This document shows positions 30,043 to 58,859 of a stretch of 64,000 nucleotides of DNA, one piece after another. The stretch lies in the sequence record MW749003.1; one strand, given 5' to 3'. Position 1 is the stretch's first letter. Each line of letters opens with the position of its first letter. The notes under the pieces are model-generated. The model was not told the DNA's origin, searched no databases, and saw only the letters and a list, made by a program, of their open reading frames with translations. The position numbers were made by a program, and so were the translations under genes.

Positions 30043-33000
30043 ATGTCATTTTTTAAAGGTATTCGGAACATAGAAAGAGTTCAATATGATCTAGTGCAAT
30101 ATTGTGACAAGGAATTTGTTCCAAAATTTATAGCAAGTCAAAATATTGATGAAGATAAATTATACGATACTATTGATTTTAGTTTACAGTTAGCTGAAAA
30201 ATTACATTTAGATTATAATATGTGTTTCACTATTGCAGTAATGCATGATTTTGGTTATATTGAGGAAGATGAAAATAATTTTAATACATTAATGAGCATA
30301 AAAGCAGATCAATTTTTATTGAGATATTTTGATGGAAGTCAAATGGAAATTATTGAGTCTGCTTGTAAAGAACACGATGGTACAAGTAGAGAAACAGGAA
30401 TATTTACATCTTTATATTCAAAGGTTATTGCAGATGCAGATAGGATGTCAATATTAAGAATTGAAGCTATGATTCGTCATTATTGGAAATTCTATTCTAG
30501 TCAAAAGGCATTTTCTAATACAGATGAGCGTCCTAATAAACTAACAGATAAAGAAATTTTTGATAAGATGTATAGTTTTCTTAAAAAAGAGTATGGTACA
30601 ATTGTATCAAAAAATAAATTATTGTTAGAAGCATCAAGAGAAATGATGAAAGATGAAATAGAGAATTCTAATAAAGTATTAAGCTCTGAAGAAGACACAA
30701 AAAGAATGGTTCTACATTTAGCTACTTATGGGGAAATCCAAATAAATAATGATGGAACGCTTACCGTAGAAAAAATAACTAAAGAGCCAATCAGTGAATC
30801 AGATCCTTTTGAATTATTTGAAAAAAATATAAAAGAATCAGTAGATGAACAACTACTAGAAGCCGCACCAAAGAATCTATCAAAGAGACAAAAGGTAGAA
30901 GATTTAATATATAAGGTACTTTCAGTTTTAGATGATACTGGAGCTAACTTGAGAAAATATAAAGAGTTCTTTGGTAAAATGAACGATGAACAATTTGATA
31001 GATATATGAAAAAATTCCTAAAAGATGAAGATGAAAATTTTTATCTTGAAATTTTACCTAATAAAAGTGAACCTTCATTAAAGCAAATTAAAAAAGCACT
31101 AGATATCTTAAAAGTACCAACTGATGAATATGTATATCTTCGACATGATGGTCATAAAAATGATCCTATTAGAACTGCATATAAAGTACCTGTTGGTTAT
31201 ATTACAATTAAGCGGGTACAACAGATCCTAAGTAAAAAGAATACTTATTCTCTTGATATTGCACAAAGAAACATGAAATCGGGTTATAATTGGCTCTCCA
31301 TTATAGCAATATAATGGCAAACACTCTCCTTAATTTCTGGGATATCCTAATTTTTAGGACAATCAGAAGCGAATTTGAATAAAAACCTAATATTCAAAAC
31401 GTTCAACGACTATCCGAAAGCAATCATACGATTGTGAGTAGCGGTGAAATTCCGCAATAGGAGTACGGCTCAAGCTATTGGAGTGGGTGAGAATCCCTTA
31501 AATGGAAACAGGAGGTATCCTTAACGGATAAAGATATAGTCTCGTCTCTATGGTAACATAGAGCAGTTCATAAGAGAACGCAGTAGATGTAGCGAGTCTA
31601 CTGGAAGATACGCAAGTTACAGGTAATGACAAAATTGCCAGAATATCTGATATTGAATCATATAGTCTTGTTGCTATAGGAGCTGATAATGCTTTAAAAG
31701 AATTCCTTGGACCACGAGCTAGATTATTGGCTCGTAATTTCCTTAATTGCTGGAAACTCCTTAGAGCTTATTAGACCACAACGTGACTGGTAACAGTGAG
31801 CGTGAAGGTTATAAGAACTAATAAGATTGGACAATCAGCAGCTAAGCTTTTATATAATTCTTTAAAAGAGCTGACAATGCTAAAACAAAAATATATTTAA
31901 ATTTAGTGTTGGAGGTAATTAAATTTTATGCCTAGAAGAAAAAGCAATGAGGAATTTATGAATGAAGTTATAGAGTTAGTAGGGGAAGAATATACATTTT
32001 TAGAGAAGTATGTACGATCACTGACTAAAATAAAGGTAAAGCATAATATTTGTAATAATATATACATGGTTACTCCTAATGATTTCCTAAATGGTGGAAA
32101 AAGATGTCCTAAATGTACTGTTCAAAAAATGGCTGATCGGTCAAGAATGACAAATGAGGAATTCATTAATAGAGTAAAAAAAGTAACTAAAAATGATTAT
32201 ACCTTTCTAGAAAAATATAATGGTACTAATAACAATTTAAAAGTAATTCATAATATTTGTGGATATAAATATTGTGTATCACCTAATAATTTCCTAAATG
32301 GTGGAAAAAGATGTCCTAAATGTGCTAATAATATTAAAAGAACAAATAAGGAATTCGTTAATGAAATTAGCAAATTAGTAGGAGAAGAATATACTTTTTT
32401 AGATGAGTATATAAATACTGATACGCCTATAAAAATTATTCATAATATTTGTGGTCATAAATATAAAACTTCCCCTAAAGAGTTTATTCATAGAAATTCT
32501 CGTTGTCCAAAGTGTAATTTTCTTAATAATGAATCTTTCTTTTCTAAAGTTATAAAAAAGACATTAAATGAATTAAATATTTATTTTATTCAAGAATATT
32601 CTATTAGAGAGTTGGGTAAAGGTAAAAAATTTGATTTTTATATACCTAGTTTAAACCTATTAATAGAGTATGATGGTAGCCAACATTTCTACCAAAAATT
32701 TAATGATAAAAATGGTTTCTTGTCACAGATAAAAAGAGACCAAGAAAAGAATGATTTTATAAAAAATAGTGAATACACTTTGATTAGAATAAGTTACAAA
32801 ATCAATAAAAACCTAGACATAATAATTAAAGAATTAATAAAAGAAAGTTCAACGACTATCGAAAAATATAATCTATTATTAATTAATAAAAATAATGTAG
32901 TAAATTTTAACAAATATTACAAGAATGCTAATATTAATTATTTTGATTATATTAAGTAGAGTACCCTACAAGCTATTGGTAGTATACTTCTGGGATGAAG

Positions 33001-40159: not shown

Positions 40160-40291
40160 TCTCAAGATGAGAATAGTGTAATTTACACTATTCTCATTAT
40201 CTTTTTCCAATTTATTTTTTAGATATATATTATAAAAAAGAATTCCCATTGTCTAAAGGGAATGAAAAGTCTATATCAGACAAATAAAAAT

Positions 40292-40732: not shown

Positions 40733-40899
40733 ACATAGGAGATATTTATCATGTTAATACAACCAGTTAGTCCAATCATACCTATTTATAATAATAACTT
40801 AAAAGATAAATTCTTAAAAAATAAAAAAAATGAGAAACAAAAGAATGATTTAATATTTAAAGATATCTTAGAGAAATATATTAAAAAAGGGGTATTATT

Positions 40900-41352
40900 A
40901 TGAAACTAGAAAAATTTAAAATACCAAGAGTTGGAATGTTATATGAATATGCAAGATTTGATAGAAATAATAGTAATAAAAAATATAGTGAGATAAAATT
41001 AGTTAATACTTTATATAAAACAGATAATGAAATTTTAAAGGATATACCTTTTGAAGAGCTAGGTTTTAAAGGTAGTTATTATAATTGCGAGATTGCTGAG
41101 TATTTAGACTCTTATGATTTTTCTATGTTTAAAAATATATTTAATTATGATGAAGAGACAGTTAATTATATTAAAGAAGTTGGAAAAGGATATAATGAAT
41201 TTATTGTAATAAATGATTTAAGAGATGAGTTTATTTTTGTTAAATATTGTGAAGTTCTTATAGTAGGTGACTGCGCTTATCCACTTCCTACAGACAATTG
41301 TTATTGGTTAGGTGGCGCTAAAGTAGTAGATTGTCCTTCAGAGGACTATTAA
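40900..41352 (+). CDS. hypothetical protein
   Basis: 150-aa ORF with SD. Confidence 0.5.
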   Translation: MKLEKFKIPRVGMLYEYARFDRNNSNKKYSEIKLVNTLYKTDNEILKDIPFEELGFKGSYYNCEIAEYLDSYDFSMFKNIFNYDEETVNYIKEVGKGYNEFIVINDLRDEFIFVKYCEVLIVGDCAYPLPTDNCYWLGGAKVVDCPSEDY

Positions 41353-41381
41353 TTAGATACATACAACTAGGAGGAATATAA

Positions 41382-44300
41382 ATGGATGACATCAGTGTAA
41401 TTAAGAATGAAGATTATGAAGGTTCACATAGATTTTTAGCAGAGGAATTACTAATGCCTAATGCAAATAAAACAGATGGTAATAGATCTACAATGTTCTG
41501 CTCTCACTTAGCACAGGCAGTAACTCTACAAAAGGCTGAACCGCCATTAGTCTATACTAACTTTGAGAATCAAGTTGGAAAGTATTCAACTGCAGGTTAT
41601 AGAAAGGCTAATAGTAATTATAAGGTTATTGAAAAAATTTATAAGAATGATTATAATTATGTACTTATTGTACAAGATCAGGAAACTGGGGAATATACAC
41701 TATTTGAAAGAGCTGAATGTGAGTTTTTAACTGAACATTATGGTTTTCAATGGGATAATGATAAAATTGATTCATTAAAGAAAGATGATACAATTGAAAA
41801 AGATACTGTATTATATAAGAATACCTGTTATGATGAAAATATGAATTTTGGTTATGGTGTTAATTTAAATGCTGCATATTTTAGTTATAAGAATGAAACA
41901 TTAGAGGATGCTATTGTAATCTCTGAAAGTGCCGCTAAAAAGCTAGGAACATATAGTGTTAACAAAGTAAAAGTATCTGTCAATACAAATGATATCTTGC
42001 TTAACCTATATGGTGATAATGAGAACTATAAAGGATTCCCAGATATTGGAGAACATATTAAAAATCAGATTATTGCTAGCCGTAGAAGATTTGATTATAA
42101 CACTGCATTATATGAATTAAAGAATCTAAATGAAATGAGAGATTCAGATACTCCATTCTTTGCTGATGGTAAGATTGTAGATATTGAAATTTTCTCTAAT
42201 GTACCTGAAGAAGAATTAAAAGTACAGAAGTATAATGAACAAGTTCTATACTATATTAATAAACAAAAAGAATTTTCTAATAATGTTTATCAAAAACTTA
42301 AAAAGATTGTAGAAGATAAAGATAGTAACATTTCAGACAAGCTATTGCACTTCTATAATAATTGTAAAATGAGAATTGATGAAAATATTTCTTACACTTA
42401 TCAGAATAGTAAGTTTAGTGGTTTTATTATGGAATTCACAATTTTAGAGGAAGAACCATTAAATAAAGGAAGTAAGATTACAGGTAGATATGGTAATAAA
42501 GGTGTAATTAGTAAAATACTCCCTGATGATCAAATGCCTACTGTGGCTGAAGGACGTTTTAAAGGACTCAAGGCAGACATTTGTCTTAATCCTCTTGGTG
42601 TATTTAATCGTTTAAATTTAGGCGATTTAAAACTCTCTTAATTGCTGGAAACTCCTTAGAGCTTATTAGACCACAACGTAATCGGTGACGATAAGCGTGA
42701 AGGTTTGAAAACTAATAAGATTGGACAATCAGCAGTTATTAGGCTTAATTTTTAAAAATCCTCCACAATTAAATGAACAAATAAATATGAATTATTCATT
42801 TTAGGGGGGATTTTATGAAAAGAAAAATTTATAATGAGGATATTATTTCTAAAGAAGTTAGTATAATTAATCCTGAATATGAATATGTTAAATTAATAAA
42901 ACTAAAAGGTGTTCATTCAAAAATATTGATCAATCATAAAACATGTGGTAGAAATATTGAAATTATTTTCAATAACTTTAAAAATGGTAGAATCTGTAAA
43001 TATTGTAGTAAGAATTGTATAGATGAGAAATCTTTTAGAGAATTAGTCAAAGAAGATACCGACTATATTTTTGAATCATTTATTTCAATGAATAAAAAAA
43101 TGACTGTAACACATAAAAAATGCAGATATGTCTATGAAGTAAGACCATCAGATTTTGTCTATAATAAACATAGGTGTCCAAATTGTTCCAATCGTATAGC
43201 ATATACTGAAAAAACTTTAAGTAAAAAAATAAAAAGCATTGATTCAGAATATGAGATGATAGAAACAATTGATGGCTCTGGAGTAAGATCAAAAATAAAA
43301 TTAAATCATAAGAAATGCAATAAATCCTTTCAACTTATTGCAAGAAACTTTTTGATTAATAATCAAAGATGTCCATATTGTTATAGTAAAAGGATGTTTA
43401 ATCCGTCATTTGATTCTAAAGGAATTAAAAAGATAAAAGAATGGCTGGATAAAGAAGGATTTAAATATGAAACTGAAAAAACTTATGATGATTTGATTTC
43501 TCCATTCTCAAATAAGAAATTAAGATTTGATATTTTTCTACCACATTTAAATACACTGATTGAATTTGATGGAAAATTCCATTTCAAGTATAGTAACTCT
43601 AGTAAAATATTCTCCAAAGAAAATTTAGAAAAAACTAAAATTAGAGATGAAGTCAAGAATCAATATTGTAAAGAAAATAATATAACACTTTTAAGGATTA
43701 GTTATACTGATAATATTCATTATAAATTAGATAAACATTTTAAGTCTAATAATTCAACGACTATCGAAACCACTCTAGCAGATCATAGTTAGAAGGAAGG
43801 GAGTAGAGTACAGCCAAGCGGTAGAGGTATTCCGTAATAAGGTTATAATTCCTCTTTAAATGGAAACAGAGAGTTAATGAAGATATAGTCTCATCTCTAT
43901 AGAGATATAGAGCAGTTCATAAGAGAACGGCATGAAAGTAGCGACTTCATGTGAAGACAATGTGAATCCAAGTCAGTTAATAGAACAAGAATTAAACTGG
44001 ATTGCTAAATTCATTAGAAAAGATATGGAAGAAGCAGGAAGTAATGAAGAAAAAGTTAGCATCTTACTTGATTTCTTAAATAGAGTGAATAAAGAAGAAA
44101 CTGAATTAATGGAAGAATTCATTAATAGTCTAAATAAAACAGAATTAGAAGAGTTTCTAAATGATATTATTGAAAATGGAATTCCTATCTGTCAAAAGCC
44201 ATTCTTCGGTAATATTGGTTTAGATGAACTTTGGGAATTATATGATCATTATAACCATATTGATTACTTTAAATGTGAGGGAATTAGTACTCCTTTAATT

Positions 44301-44729
44301 ATTGGAGAAATTTATATGGTTAGATTAAAACATGAGCCACATTCTAAATTTAGTGCTCGTAGTACATCATTTATGAACCTAAGAGGTCTACCAGCTAAAT
44401 CTAAGAATTTTAAAGAGCATAAAGATTTATATTCAAAAACACCTGTACGTATTGGTAATATGGAGATTTCTAACTTAAGTCTTACTAATGAAATGGGTTC
44501 TATTATGGATATGCTAAATTCATACTCTAATAATGAGACTAATAGAAGAGAACTTATTATGCAATTATTAACTGGAAATCCATTTGATACCAATATTGAT
44601 CTTTCAGATGTAGAGTCAGGTACAAGTAAGATTCTTAAATCTTTATTCACATGTCTCGGTCTTTCTATTGATGATGTAGAAGAAGAATGGGAAAATAAAC
44701 TAAATGGAAAAGTAGAGGATGAAAAATAA
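41382..44729 (+). CDS. non-virion RNAP beta C-terminal subunit (AR9 gp089-like), spliced (exons 41382-42612, 43963-44729; 665 aa)
   Basis: LEDAIVISES, GSKITGRYGNKG, splice gives FNR-L(t|tg)-NPSQ, MVRLKH, RIGNME. Confidence 0.93.
42613..43962 (+). mobile_element. group IA2-like intron with homing endonuclease (1350 nt)
   Basis: P1 aatcgtt/ggcgatt with U42612.G42621; P7 gacta/tagtc; terminal G43962; phase-1 insertion. Confidence 0.92.
42815..43792 (+). CDS. intron-encoded homing endonuclease (three Zn-ribbon repeats plus Vsr/DUF559-like nuclease)
   Basis: HK.C...RCP.C repeats; RFDIFLP...IEFDGKFH. Confidence 0.85.
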   Translation: MKRKIYNEDIISKEVSIINPEYEYVKLIKLKGVHSKILINHKTCGRNIEIIFNNFKNGRICKYCSKNCIDEKSFRELVKEDTDYIFESFISMNKKMTVTHKKCRYVYEVRPSDFVYNKHRCPNCSNRIAYTEKTLSKKIKSIDSEYEMIETIDGSGVRSKIKLNHKKCNKSFQLIARNFLINNQRCPYCYSKRMFNPSFDSKGIKKIKEWLDKEGFKYETEKTYDDLISPFSNKKLRFDIFLPHLNTLIEFDGKFHFKYSNSSKIFSKENLEKTKIRDEVKNQYCKENNITLLRISYTDNIHYKLDKHFKSNNSTTIETTLADHS

Positions 44730-44902
44730 TGGGAGTGAATGAAATAGAAAAAGAAATTAGATGGGTTGCTGATAATACTATCTTTACCCATTTTACTTTT
44801 GGTATTCGTAATTTTAAGAAGATTCTAGAAGCTGTTTTAATTAAGTTAGATGGTCAATATGACACAAAATTAGTTCAAAATATAACTAGAGAAATTTCAT
44901 AA
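44729..44902 (+). CDS. 57-aa hypothetical protein (not in ORF track)
   Basis: TAATG coupling to the nvRNAP stop codon. Confidence 0.45.
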   Translation: MGVNEIEKEIRWVADNTIFTHFTFGIRNFKKILEAVLIKLDGQYDTKLVQNITREIS

Positions 44903-46279: not shown

Positions 46280-48923
46280 TTGGATAAACTTAAAATTCAG
46301 AAATTCATTATAAGTCTTAAACAAAAGAAAAATTTGAGTGCAGAAAAATTAGAAGAGGTCAAATCATTTCTAGATAAGGCTTCAGAAGCCTATTATAACA
46401 CTGGGCAAGAAATCTTATCTGATGATGAATTTGATGCCATTGCCAGAGAATTTAAACGTTTAGGTGGTAAATTAGATGTAGGTGCTAATCCACCTAAAGG
46501 AAAAGGAACAGTAGATGTATCTCATACATTTGCTGAGTTAGTTGGTACATTAGATAAAACAAATTTTATTTATGAAAAGAACGTTGATGATCCAAGCAAG
46601 AAGAGTGTAGAAGAATGGCTAAACAATATTATCAAAAAGTTAGGGAATGATAAAGAATTTAGTCTAGGTATCAGTTTTAAATTTGATGGTAATTCGGTTG
46701 TTATTGAATATAAAGATGGAAAAGTAGTTAGAGCATTAACAAGAGGTAGAAATGGTCTAGGAATGGATTTAACTCATGTCTTTAAAGATCATAATATTAA
46801 AAGAAAAGATCATGTAGGAATCAAATATGAAATCATTATTCCTTGGAAACGTTATGAAGACTTAATGAAAGATACTGGTGTATCATATGCTAATCCTAGA
46901 TCATTAGTATCTGGTAAATTAGGTGACGATAATGCTTATGAGTATTATAAATATATGGAATTAGTTCCATTATGGGTAAAACCTTACAATTCAACAATGG
47001 AAAGAACTGAACAGCTAGAATTTATTGAAGAAGCATTTGGGGAAGATAATAGTTTATTCAGTGATTATAGATTGATTGAAGGAGTAACAGGAAATAATTT
47101 AACTCCTTTTATGGAAGAATTAGAAGATATGTATGAAAAATATAATATTGAAAGATATAATCTTCCATTTATGATAGATGGTTTAGTTATTGAAGTATTA
47201 GAGGAAGATATTAGAAATACATTAGGGTATGTAAATGATGAACCTAACTGGGCGACTGCTTTAAAATTCCCTTATATGGAAAAAACTACTACTGTAACTG
47301 ATTTTGATTTTACATTAGGTGACTCAGGAATTATTACTGCAAGAGTCTGGTATGAACCAGTAACTTTTAATGGAACTGAACACCGAAAACAATCTCTTCA
47401 GAACTATAAGAGATTTAAAGAGTTGGGTTTAGGAATTGGTAGTCAAATCTTGGTTCAATATCGTAAATAAATTGCGATTCATATCAGTAATGATATGTCT
47501 AAACTCTCTTAATTGCTGGGACACCCTTAGAGCCTATTAAACTAAAACGTAACTGGTAACGGTAAGCGTGAATGTTTTAAAAATTAATAGGATTGGGCAA
47601 TCAGCAGCTGTCAAACATTAATGGACGAAATTTTTTATTGGAATATGACGGACATTATCATAAAACTGGTTGGAAAGGAAATCCTAAAAGTAAAGAAATA
47701 GTAGAAAAACATGATATGACCAAAAATATTTTCTGTCTAAAGAATAATATTTTTCTTTATCGAATTCAATCAGACAAAGAAACAAATGAACAAAAAATAC
47801 TTAATGAGTTAAATTTAATGTTTGGTAGTTCAACGACTATCGAAAATCTTAAAAAAGATGAGTAGAGTACCCCACAAGCGATTGGTGGCATAATTCTGGA
47901 ATGAATTATGGTATGGAATACTCCATATTGGGAAACAGAGAGTACCCTAAGAAGAATTATTAATTAAATTATTAGGGTATTGATATAGTCTCAACTTTAG
48001 GGAAACCTAAAGCAGTTCAAAAAGAACGGTATGAATCTAGCGAATTCATATGAAGTATATTGAATGATTGTCTTACCTATGTTGTTCCAATTTTAAATGA
48101 ACACAATAAAAATATCGCTCCTCACCCTTATACTGATAAATGTCCAGTATGTGATGGTGAAGTTGGGATTACTAAAACTGGTGCTTTCGCCTATTGTAAG
48201 AATGAAACATGTGAAGGTAAAACAGTAGGTAAAATTCAGAACTATTTAACTAAGATGGATATTAAAGGGATTAAAGAATCAACTATTGTCAAACTTCATA
48301 ATGCAGGATTAGTAAAAAGTATCACTGATCTTTATACAATGGATTATGGAAAGATTGCTGAAGTAGACGGTTTAGGAGCAATTGCTTCAATTAATATTAG
48401 TGGTGCTATCAATAGTAAAATTCCATATGACTATGAAATTATTGGTGCATTAGGTATTAGTAGTTTTTCTACATCCAAAGCTAAAGAACTTTGTAAAGTA
48501 TTTTCTGTTCAAGAAATGCTTGATATACTTGAGTGTTACTATCCTGAAAATCTAATTAACAGTATTACTCAACAAGAAGGATTTTCTGATATTACCGCTA
48601 ACTATATTGTGGAAGGCTTACAAAAGAATAAAGAAACTATTGAATTTTTATTAAAAAGAGAACACAAAGTCTTTAAAACAGAATATGAAAAAATGGCTGG
48701 AGTACAAGCTATGAAAATTGTTTTTACTAACTTCCGTGATGAAGCAATGCAAATTCAATTAGAGATGGCTGGTCATAAAATTACAAGTGCAGTCTCAAGA
48801 AAAACTAATATTGTCGTAACCCCTAATCCAAACGGAAATACAGTTAAATTAAAGAAAGCAAGAGAATATGGAATTCGAATTGTAAGTGTAGATGAGTTTA
48901 AAGAAGAAATGGGAATTAGCTAA
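46280..48923 (+). CDS. ligA: NAD+-dependent DNA ligase, spliced (exons 46280-47464, 48063-48923; about 681 aa)
   Basis: AYY...LSDDEFD, KFDG, LTRG.G..G, NPR, DGLVI, WATALKF; Zn finger CPVC; HhH motifs; BRCT. Confidence 0.92.
47465..48062 (+). mobile_element. group IA2-like intron with decayed endonuclease (598 nt)
   Basis: P1 atcgu/gcgau; P7 gacta/tagtc; terminal G48062; spliced junction YR|NDCLTY. Confidence 0.88.
47593..47865 (+). pseudogene. homing-endonuclease remnant (nuclease domain only)
   Basis: FLLEYDGHYH...D..KN.FC..NNI.L.RI; no Zn repeats, SD or promoter. Confidence 0.75.
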
Positions 48924-57709: not shown

Positions 57710-58859
57710 TTAAAATTGAATTAAAAGGAAATTATCAATTTCTTTTTTAATTTCATCTTCAATAAATAAAACAGCTTTACCGTCTTCAGTATTAAAACTA
57801 ACTGTTTTACCATCTTCACCTAATTTGGCAGTTCTTTCATCTAAACCAAGATGATCAACTGTTGTTTTAATATTTTGACTCTCTTCCTTAATGTAATTAA
57901 GGATTTCATCTTGAGCCACTGACACCATTAGACCTTCATTAAGAATTCTCTTATTCATAGGATGAATAGCATCTTCTTTAATAATATTTGTCTGATAAGC
58001 ATTAGAATGAGAAGGGAAGATTACCCAATCCCAAGTAACAATGTGAAGAGGTTTTTCAACTCGTGTTAGTCCATTCACTTTACGAGTAACACCACCAAGA
58101 CCTCTCATTGAAAATGCTACTTCAGTACCTTGTCTAATTAAACCTTCCATATCTTTACCAACAGCAGTGTTAGTAGTTGCTACCACACCTTTTAGTAATT
58201 TTTGTTCCCACCATAATTTCTCAATAACATGAGACATTCTAGTTTGATCAATGTATGTCTGTCTTTCCATTTTATCCGAAAGAGGGTGCAAATATCTTCA
58301 TATGGATTCGCTACTTCCATACCGTTCTCTTATGAACTGCTCTAAGTTTCCCTAGAGTTGAGACTATATCAAGTTCTTCAGCATTACTGTTAAGAACCTC
58401 TCTATTTCCACTATGCTTATAGTGTACTCCCATTTGGGATAGTCGTTGAACTCCATTGGTAAATATTTGTACATATATTTTACCAATAAAGCTGCTGATT
58501 GTCCAATCTTATTAGTTCTTATAACCTTCACGCTCACTGTTACCAGTCACGTTGTGGTCTAATAAGCTCTAAGGAGTTTCCAGCAATTAAGAGAGTTTAG
58601 ACATAGTATTTCTACTATGAATGGCAACCCTACCAGCCTCTCCGAACAATGATTTACGTCTTAACTTTTCTTGAATTTGAGGAGAACGAATAGCACCATC
58701 TAATGCTTCAAATGCATATTCCCTTCTATTTCTATTACCAGCTTCTGCCTCTTGAAGAATAGCTTCAATTACAACATTATCTTTATTATGCTCAATAATA
58801 TTAGGTTTAACTGGTTCTGATGTAGATTCAATAATTAGAAAACCACAATTTTGATCCAT
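57710..58859 (-). CDS. prohead maturation protease (T4 gp21-like), spliced (exons 58859-58632, 58288-57710; about 268 aa)
   Basis: NRNRR.Y; spliced GEAG|HP; FSMRG; TWDWV..PS. Confidence 0.88.
58289..58631 (-). mobile_element. group IA2-like intron, no ORF (343 nt)
   Basis: P1 tggu/gcca; core ttaattgctgg...aatcagcag...ttcaacgacta...atatagtc; terminal G at 58289. Confidence 0.92.

Follow-up and report, generated by a model that had tools for sequence, protein, structure and literature searches.

How can an endonuclease gene be expressed from inside a group I intron, when the end of its own reading frame encodes part of the ribozyme? We asked this question for a locus in the last 64 kb of sequence record MW749003.1, Bacillus phage vB_BspM_Internexus, a member of the genus Takahashivirus and a relative of phages PBS1 and AR9. 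This stretch of 64,000 nucleotides (nt) is called the window here, and positions are counted from its first letter. The locus is a homing endonuclease open reading frame (ORF) inserted in the gene that encodes the C-terminal half of the beta subunit of the non-virion RNA polymerase (nvRNAP), a homologue of AR9 g089. An earlier note on this DNA had proposed that a hairpin masks the ribosome-binding site (RBS) of the endonuclease, that a late promoter lies within this hairpin, and that both together form an expression switch. The note did not mention a group I intron, or that the ORF runs through the 3' strand of P6, J6/7 and the 5' strand of P7. Judged from the sequence and from related genes, the hairpin with its internal late promoter probably does work as an expression switch for the endonuclease.

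We analyzed the fold of the RNA around the endonuclease start codon. The outer stem described in the earlier note, aaaatcctcc (42755-42764) against gggggatttt (42805-42814), was present as 10 base pairs, one of them U-G. In the minimum free energy (MFE) fold this stem extended to 42749-42764 and 42805-42821 with A42815 bulged, and both the Shine-Dalgarno sequence (SD) and the UG of the AUG were paired. The inner stem aaatgaa/ttcattt was also found in this fold (Table 1). The MFE of the hairpin was -16.9 kcal/mol (fold of 42745-42830, z = -2.53), and 4 of 200 dinucleotide shuffles folded as well. The same arm was the MFE partner of the RBS in contexts of 119, 288 and 501 nt. The predicted cost of opening the RBS (42803-42817) was 9.7-14.4 kcal/mol for long RNAs, and it fell to 3.2 kcal/mol when the RNA begins at 42787.

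The late promoter proposed for the hairpin proved to be an exact match to the AR9 late consensus, with AACA at 42776-79, six further nucleotides, and TA at 42786-87. According to the promoter data of Lavysh et al. (PMC5312081), AR9 late promoters read AACA-(6N)-T-A/G, where the last base is the transcription start site (TSS). The AACA and the +1 base were required in vitro for transcription by nvRNAP (Sokolova et al., PMC5449584). An AR9 nvRNAP late promoter was defined by AACA at -11 to -8, U/T at -1 and A/G at +1, and further, in a genome with deoxyuridine (dU), by uracil instead of thymine at -11 and -10 of the template, as well as by a mapped late-appearing 5' end at +1. The late promoter mapped for AR9 g281 has the same core and flank (gaacaaataaatA), and the 12-nt core matched a secondary promoter of AR9 g237. 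The predicted TSS lies downstream of both 5' arms, and the RNA predicted to start at A42787 would lack them both, as the earlier note had expected of the late transcript. Its leader of 28 nt would be typical of AR9, in which mapped late leaders are mostly 20-35 nt long.

We also counted how often such a motif occurs. There were 93 matches in the window on both strands, compared with 120 +/- 10 in shuffled sequences, i.e. approximately one per 1376 nt per strand. At this frequency, a given start codon would by chance have a motif with the TSS 15-45 nt ahead of it with a probability of approximately 2%. On the plus strand between 40100 and 42830 the motif occurred three times, and one of these is the orthologue of the mapped AR9 promoter P088. 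AACA-N6-T-R was under-represented across the window (99 of 100 shuffles had at least as many matches), as would fit a selection that removes spurious start sites of nvRNAP. The predicted late RNA begins with AUG and a mini-ORF of five codons (42787-42804, AUG AAU UAU UCA UUU UAG), the stop codon of which overlaps the first SD bases. This may be a coincidence or a leaderless mini-ORF.

We propose that the switch would work as follows. In RNAs from the upstream promoters, that is the early and late pre-mRNA of the polymerase gene, segment 42749-42764 would pair with the SD, the spacer and the AUG (42805-42821), and the inner stem would reinforce this sequestration. Ribosomes would be kept from loading, and hence from traversing the ORF's 3' end, where P6 3', J6/7 and P7 5' are encoded, and splicing of the pre-mRNA would thereby be protected. 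The nvRNAP would recognize AACA-N6-TA in the hairpin loop and start at A42787. The RNA made from there would carry no 5' arms, could not splice, would have an open ribosome site and would serve as the endonuclease mRNA. We infer the promoter activity, the translational repression and the rationale of splicing protection from these features. The promoter would be read by the very polymerase whose beta gene hosts the intron, so that synthesis of the endonuclease would need prior splicing.

Since no orthologue of this intron was found in the collections searched, paralogous endonucleases were used for comparison. The late motif was present in 15 of approximately 20 distinct endonuclease genes, with the TSS 19-39 nt upstream of the start codon. 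Late TSSs of the AR9 Vsr-like/Hef-like endonucleases g079, g146, g147, g188 and g265 have been mapped by differential RNA sequencing (dRNA-seq; Table S3 of PMC5312081), and in all five genes they lie 24-39 nt before the start codon. We observed that each of these five TSSs is located in the loop of an inverted repeat, or at the 3' edge of its 5' arm. The 3' arm of each repeat is in the leader, where it adjoins or covers the SD. The suggestion that the logic of phage T4 I-TevI is used here with an AR9-type promoter thus holds as far as can be judged from sequence and comparison, and the mapped late TSSs of paralogues in equivalent hairpins strengthen it.

Further, we pooled 15 non-redundant endonuclease 5' regions from five Takahashivirus genomes (AR9, PBS1, Internexus, Goe21 and BpSp) and compared them with 59 mapped non-endonuclease AR9 late promoters as controls. 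Most TSSs in the pooled endonuclease set are predicted ones. We calculated the straddling energy (ddE), which is how much energy is gained when the regions on the two sides of the TSS are joined. The median ddE was -11.1 kcal/mol for the endonucleases and -3.4 kcal/mol for the controls (p = 5e-7), and the median probability of RBS pairing to sequence upstream of the TSS was 0.62 and 0.28, respectively (p = 2.5e-4). The TSS came after the 5' arm in 15/15 cases. For the hairpin studied here the two values were -15.9 kcal/mol and 0.79, respectively. On either measure, one of the 59 controls was equally extreme.

The arm sequences were unrelated between paralogues. Examples of arm pairs are UCAUCCC/GGGAUGA (homologous intron at 76 kb), CCUAACAUUAG/CUAAUGUUAGG (at 125.6 kb) and AACCUAAC/GUUAGGUU (PBS1). 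A second intron endonuclease in the window (31884-32959), the orthologue of AR9 g079, sits in a virion polymerase subunit gene and also has the promoter-in-hairpin layout.

The layout was also found with early promoters. In AR9 the HNH endonuclease g190 has a mapped early TSS in a hairpin with a straddling energy of -14.6, and for g265 early and late TSSs have been mapped 11 nt apart. A predicted case is the Internexus endonuclease at record position 168190, where a 9-bp arm covers the SD and the loop carries an exact early consensus. This exact early consensus, aaatatatattataat, stands in the loop of an SD-covering hairpin both at 168100-168200 of the Internexus record and at 152015-152090 of AR9 (g190). 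As early promoters occupy the loop in the same manner, the layout is independent of polymerase class.

Several observations weigh against the switch. The late consensus carries little information, and only a minority of motif matches in AR9 are mapped TSSs. The sequence is AU-rich, which gives a high background of pairing. Stability was biased towards the sense over the antisense strand in 13/15 endonucleases, yet in 40/59 controls too, so that this bias speaks only weakly for a function in RNA. Within AR9 alone (n = 5) RBS occlusion was not significantly higher than in the controls (p = 0.12), and several non-endonuclease late genes were similarly occluded, so the layout is not specific for endonucleases. 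In g188, g079 and Internexus 54597 the 3' arm abuts the SD and does not cover it. The endonuclease set was partly chosen by the presence of the promoter motif. No close orthologue that would reveal covariation in this hairpin was found in the collections searched. Finally, the start at 42787 and the effect on translation are predictions in this phage, and their support is comparative.

Close orthologues of the endonuclease and its hairpin were not detected in IMG/VR or, by exact pattern, in metagenome contigs. None of the public sequencing runs holds the intron; of the words sampled from 42500-44100, no run had more than 11%, presumably from shared exon parts. As for the occluded late genes, RBS pairing upstream of the mapped late TSS was predicted to be 0.72-0.79 in AR9 g121, g145, g128 and g214 (terminase, virion polymerase beta', portal and structural protein). 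Leader-dependent translation may therefore be wider in these phages, as it is for T4 soc, e and 49.

Because an inverted repeat is also a feature of the DNA, we considered that it may act there. By forming a cruciform or by easier melting it could present the single-stranded template 3'-UUGU-5' to nvRNAP, and would then be a promoter enhancer instead of, or beside, an RNA switch. Single-stranded DNA supports specific transcription by this enzyme, which recognizes the template strand (PMC5449584). Several of the arms are perfect inverted repeats, and the promoter fills the hairpin loop almost exactly in g188 and g079. However, AACA or the whole core is in the stem in 5/15 cases (Internexus 125644 and 77456, BpSp 138118 and 110629, AR9 g146), while the rule that the TSS follows the 5' arm has no exception among the 15. 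The occurrence of the layout with early promoters, which belong to the virion polymerase, also speaks against such a role, and the position of the 3' arms at the SD or AUG is left unexplained by it. G-U pairs are frequent in the stems. In the 5' arm of g079 the Internexus and PBS1 sequences differ from AR9 by C-to-U and A-to-G changes, which turn two Watson-Crick pairs into G-U pairs; such substitutions are tolerated by RNA but not by DNA pairing. We therefore consider a role of the repeat in DNA quite unlikely.

Another explanation is that the hairpin is peripheral intron structure, a P6a-type extension that closes the long P6 loop. The overlap with the SD and the promoter match would then be coincidental, and translation would proceed from the pre-mRNA or the excised intron. 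The hairpin does start directly after the 5' strand of P6, the promoter consensus is short, and the TSS at 42787 is a prediction. On the other hand, homologous introns have the layout in common although their sequence after P4/P6 is not conserved, and the free-standing endonucleases g188, g265 and Internexus 125644 share the layout. The five paralogues with TSSs mapped at the equivalent site, and the low chance of a motif at the right distance, also argue against coincidence. We find this explanation unlikely.

It would be very improbable that the hairpin is a terminator, an attenuator or an RNA-processing or stability element for upstream transcription. The free-standing g188 has a 15-bp stem just past the stop codon of g189, which is followed by a U-rich tract, and this counts in favour of such an element. 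In the window, however, no terminator-like site was found in 42300-44300, nor between the upstream promoters and the endonuclease ORF, and the U-run of the hairpin belongs to the stem. A terminator inside the intron would also harm an essential polymerase gene.

Coordinates of the features discussed here are collected in Table 1.

Table 1. Features of the endonuclease locus and of its upstream region (window coordinates).
Feature	Position	Strand	Remarks
Early-promoter-like element (TATATTAT + N6 + G)	40226..40240	+	Identical to AR9 P087; predicted early TSS at approximately 40240
Late-promoter motif	40836..40847	+	Orthologous to mapped AR9 late promoter P088 (AR9 TSS 72685)
Exon 1	41382..42612	+	blastn: AR9 g089 nt 1-1226 vs 41382-42607, 97.7% identity
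Group I intron, 1350 nt	42613..43962	+	Last base G43962 is omega-G
P6, 5' strand	42735..42748	+	Covariation across eight paralogous introns
Outer stem, 5' arm, with anti-SD-like CCUCC	42749..42764	+	Ends before the predicted TSS; directly follows the P6 5' strand
Inner stem, 5' arm	42770..42776	+	Pairs with 42796-42802 in the MFE fold
Putative AR9-type late promoter, AACA-N6-TA	42776..42787	+	Predicted TSS A42787, 28-nt leader
Outer stem, 3' arm: SD AGGGGGG (42803-09), spacer and start codon (42815-17)	42803..42821	+	MFE fold
Homing endonuclease ORF, 325 amino acids	42815..43792	+	Zinc-ribbon repeats, then putative Vsr-like (EDxHD-type) nuclease domain
J6/7 and P7 5' strand (UUCAACGACUAU)	43753..43764	+	Classical element, inside the ORF
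J8/7 and P7 3' strand (AGAUAUAGUC, 43882-91), P9 hairpin	43881..43912	+	Partial RF00028 match
Exon 2	43963..44729	+	blastn: AR9 g089 nt 1234-1998 vs 43965-44729, 98.2% identity

We examined whether the endonuclease truly lies in an intron. AR9 g089 is a single uninterrupted gene of 1998 nt, and colinearity with it was compared separately for each exon. The 7 nt between the two AR9 alignments come from 42608-42612 and 43963-43964. Together with the alignments they place the insertion at exactly 42613-43962. The summed exon lengths are exactly 1998 nt, as in AR9, and excision at 42612/43963 brings back the AR9 residues NRLNPSQ and restores the host reading frame. AR9, PBS1 and Goe21 match just the flanks of 41300-44800; AR9 and PBS1 are without the intron and endonuclease of the window.

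From its sequence the insertion is a group I intron of an IA-like subgroup. P1 has 7 bp (42606-12 with 42621-27), with a U42612-G42621 pair at the 5' splice site, and P10 has 5 bp (42616-20 with 43963-67). P7 is a perfect helix of 6 bp (43759-64 with 43885-90). The core elements placed are the 5' strand of P3 together with P4, P5, P6 and P7. The 5' strand of P3 (42633-39), P4 (42643-48 with 42729-34) and P5 (42652-56 with 42721-25) were mapped from the alignment of an ORF-less homologue. P6 is a long-range helix of 14 bp (42735-48 with 43740-53), and in the eight paralogous introns the sequences of its segments differ while the pairing is always kept. When the paralogous intron at 75.9 kb of the record is compared, a hairpin with a GUGA cap (42681-92) differs by two compensatory pair changes.

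An Rfam scan of the whole intron or the whole window gave no group I match. Partial matches to RF00028 were obtained for the 3' non-coding part (32.6 bits, E = 6.6e-7 in the slice) and for the 5' part (15.8 bits), the threshold being 50. The ORF-less homologue at 58340-58644 on the minus strand shares 83-89% identity with the core of this intron and scored 70.3 bits against RF00028 (E = 8e-18). It sits in the prohead protease gene, and its match was obtained in a scan of a 600-nt slice. As the whole-window scan at the gathering threshold missed it, an empty result of the fast filters cannot be relied upon for this AU-rich genome. Another homologous 5' core, 83% identical, lies inside the DNA ligase gene (47501-47853). 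A short ORF then follows which matches only the C-terminal part of the endonuclease, and it is probably a decayed copy.

In the GenBank record MW749003 the polymerase gene appears as two "putative RNA polymerase beta subunit" coding sequences, INTERNEXUS_270 and INTERNEXUS_272, with the "hypothetical protein" INTERNEXUS_271 between them. The record has no annotation of the group I intron, and the start that it gives for INTERNEXUS_272 is the in-frame ATG 43932, inside the intron. One could read this as a free-standing endonuclease that splits the polymerase gene into two translated pieces, like the "genes in pieces" of Aeh1 nrdA. Exon 1 reads through to a stop at 42641, the ATG 43932 precedes exon 2, and the two coding sequences of GenBank agree with such a division. 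Nevertheless, we consider it extremely improbable. P1, P10, omega-G, and the canonical J6/7-P7 and J8/7-P7' are all present, RF00028 matches in part here and in full on the close homologue, and the exons are exactly colinear with AR9 g089, while no convincing SD was found before 43932.

The endonuclease ORF is placed in the P6 loop of the intron, and its last approximately 50 nt encode P6 3', J6/7 and P7 5'. In 7/8 introns examined the ORF extends 25-117 nt beyond the start of J6/7. For T4 I-TevI, the rationale shown for the hairpin is that ribosomes are kept off the unspliced pre-mRNA, so that the intron folds (PMC2988022). As the ORFs in these phages run into the ribozyme core, this is the most economical rationale here too, and the likely purpose of the hairpin is to keep ribosomes out of the core. 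The C-terminal "S(S/T)TTIE" ("STTIE") of most paralogues is the translation of the conserved J6/7-P7 sequence of the ribozyme (43753-43770), and the same nucleotides are thus under both RNA and protein constraint.

The endonuclease belongs to a family that is widespread in phages of Firmicutes (446 records). It matches PHROG 559 (E = 3e-57), which bears the name "HNH endonuclease". Takahashivirus genomes carry many paralogues, which in the AR9 annotation are group I intron "VSR" or "Hef-like" homing endonucleases. The closest paralogue is approximately 36% identical, and in a phage collection no relative exceeded 37% identity. D239, E250, D252, H256 and D278 are invariant in seven paralogues. 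Pfam gave weak zinc-ribbon matches only, and a phmmer search against PDB sequences returned nothing relevant. We built a structure model from a two-sequence, window-only alignment. It has low confidence, with a predicted local distance difference test (pLDDT) score of 62, and gives the C-terminal domain the topology alpha-beta-beta-beta-alpha-beta. The Foldseek matches of this model included E. coli Vsr (1vsr, prob 1.00) and the catalytic domain of I-Bth0305I (3r3p, prob 0.99), with E > 1e-3. The endonuclease would thus resemble the EDxHD/Vsr-like I-Bth0305I (PDB 3R3P), which was among the top matches, in the C-terminal fold topology of this low-confidence model. It differs from I-Bth0305I in having three zinc-ribbon repeats in its N-terminal part, and the sequence similarity of the two is undetectable by phmmer.

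We then considered in which RNAs the switch would be off. According to the AR9 expression data (PMC5312081), g089 is "continuously expressed". Since both upstream promoters, early and late, are kept in the window, hairpin-bearing pre-mRNA should exist late in infection too. The earlier note had claimed that the endonuclease would be silent in the pre-mRNA and on only late. This claim is too simple, as the host gene is probably late-promoted as well. The switch thus probably selects by transcript, own promoter against read-through, and not by time alone. The AR9 genes g079 and g146/g147 lie within late genes for virion polymerase subunits and are nonetheless equipped with late promoters of their own in hairpins, and g190 has an early promoter inside the intron of the late gene g189 (from the same AR9 data, PMC5312081). 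With early-promoter versions and late host genes, the common denominator would be "translated only from its own promoter's transcript" and not "late".

Three groups of known systems were compared with this locus. A hairpin over the RBS together with a late promoter, giving late transcripts without the 5' arm, is described for T4 I-TevI (td intron), I-TevII, I-TevIII, T4 segB and Aeh1 mobE (PMC2988022). The window resembles this class in four respects. The endonuclease is housed in the P6-region loop of a group I intron and its host gene is transcribed from upstream promoters; the SD and AUG are predicted to be sequestered in read-through RNA; a predicted internal late promoter would give RNA without the inhibitory arm; and the ORF's 3' end gives core nucleotides of the ribozyme, so that translation would interfere with splicing. 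It differs in that the promoter serves a sigma-less, uracil-dependent multisubunit polymerase, which is encoded by the phage and reads the template strand, whereas T4 uses the host RNA polymerase with gp55. Further, the host of the phage is Gram-positive, the endonuclease is probably Vsr-like and not GIY-YIG or HNH, and the polymerase that would read the promoter has one subunit encoded by the intron's host gene. The host gene probably has a late promoter too, which would make the separation one by transcript and not by time, and the case in the window is one predicted from sequence. The autorepression operator, an accessory feature of I-TevI that resembles the homing site and overlaps the promoter, was not detected: in a comparison of the homing site with 42745-42820 the best local alignment was 15/23, and 29% of shuffles were as good. 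The aligned bases lie at 42758-42780, and their counterpart is the 3'-exon side of the homing site, which is intron-less in AR9 g089; in this AU-rich sequence the match is not significant.

The AR9 genes g079, g146, g147, g188, g190 and g265 are the second group. They are of the same genus and intron family and have a hairpin that straddles the TSS, and all except g190 belong to the paralogous endonuclease family. The parts of the AR9 account that we used (PMC5312081) do not describe the hairpin layout. A literature search, the scope of which did not include the 2016 AR9 genome paper, found no description of the mechanism for AR9-like phages. The intron and endonuclease of the window differ from this group in being absent from AR9 and PBS1. 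The third group are T4 soc, e, 49, 25 and 26, late genes that are repressed on early polycistronic RNAs by RBS hairpins (PMC2988022). There too the position of the promoter decides whether the RNA carries the inhibitory arm, but these genes are not mobile elements.

A wider proposal can be put forward tentatively, and we regard it as unlikely. The promoter-in-hairpin unit could be a portable module that travels with Takahashivirus endonucleases and takes promoters of either polymerase. In this intron the endonuclease promoter would be read by nvRNAP only, and as the beta subunit of that enzyme needs a spliced transcript, synthesis of the endonuclease would be licensed by splicing. The repeat may also expose the promoter as single-stranded DNA, and a single sequence would then serve two functions.

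In summary, the proposed mechanism is that of T4, and the case in the window would be a further, convergent instance which recurs in about 15 related endonuclease genes. Until now this arrangement has been documented for T-even phages of Gram-negative hosts that use the host RNA polymerase. For AR9-like phages our analysis supplies predicted start sites, and it gives a better annotation for a gene that is listed as two "RNA polymerase beta" fragments and a hypothetical protein. The long and short leaders would offer a simple test system for translational control in jumbo phages with uracil DNA. That the arrangement appears rebuilt with promoters of a sigma-less, uracil-dependent polymerase, in approximately 15 genes and with unrelated arms, argues for a convergent and probably necessary solution for intron-borne endonucleases.

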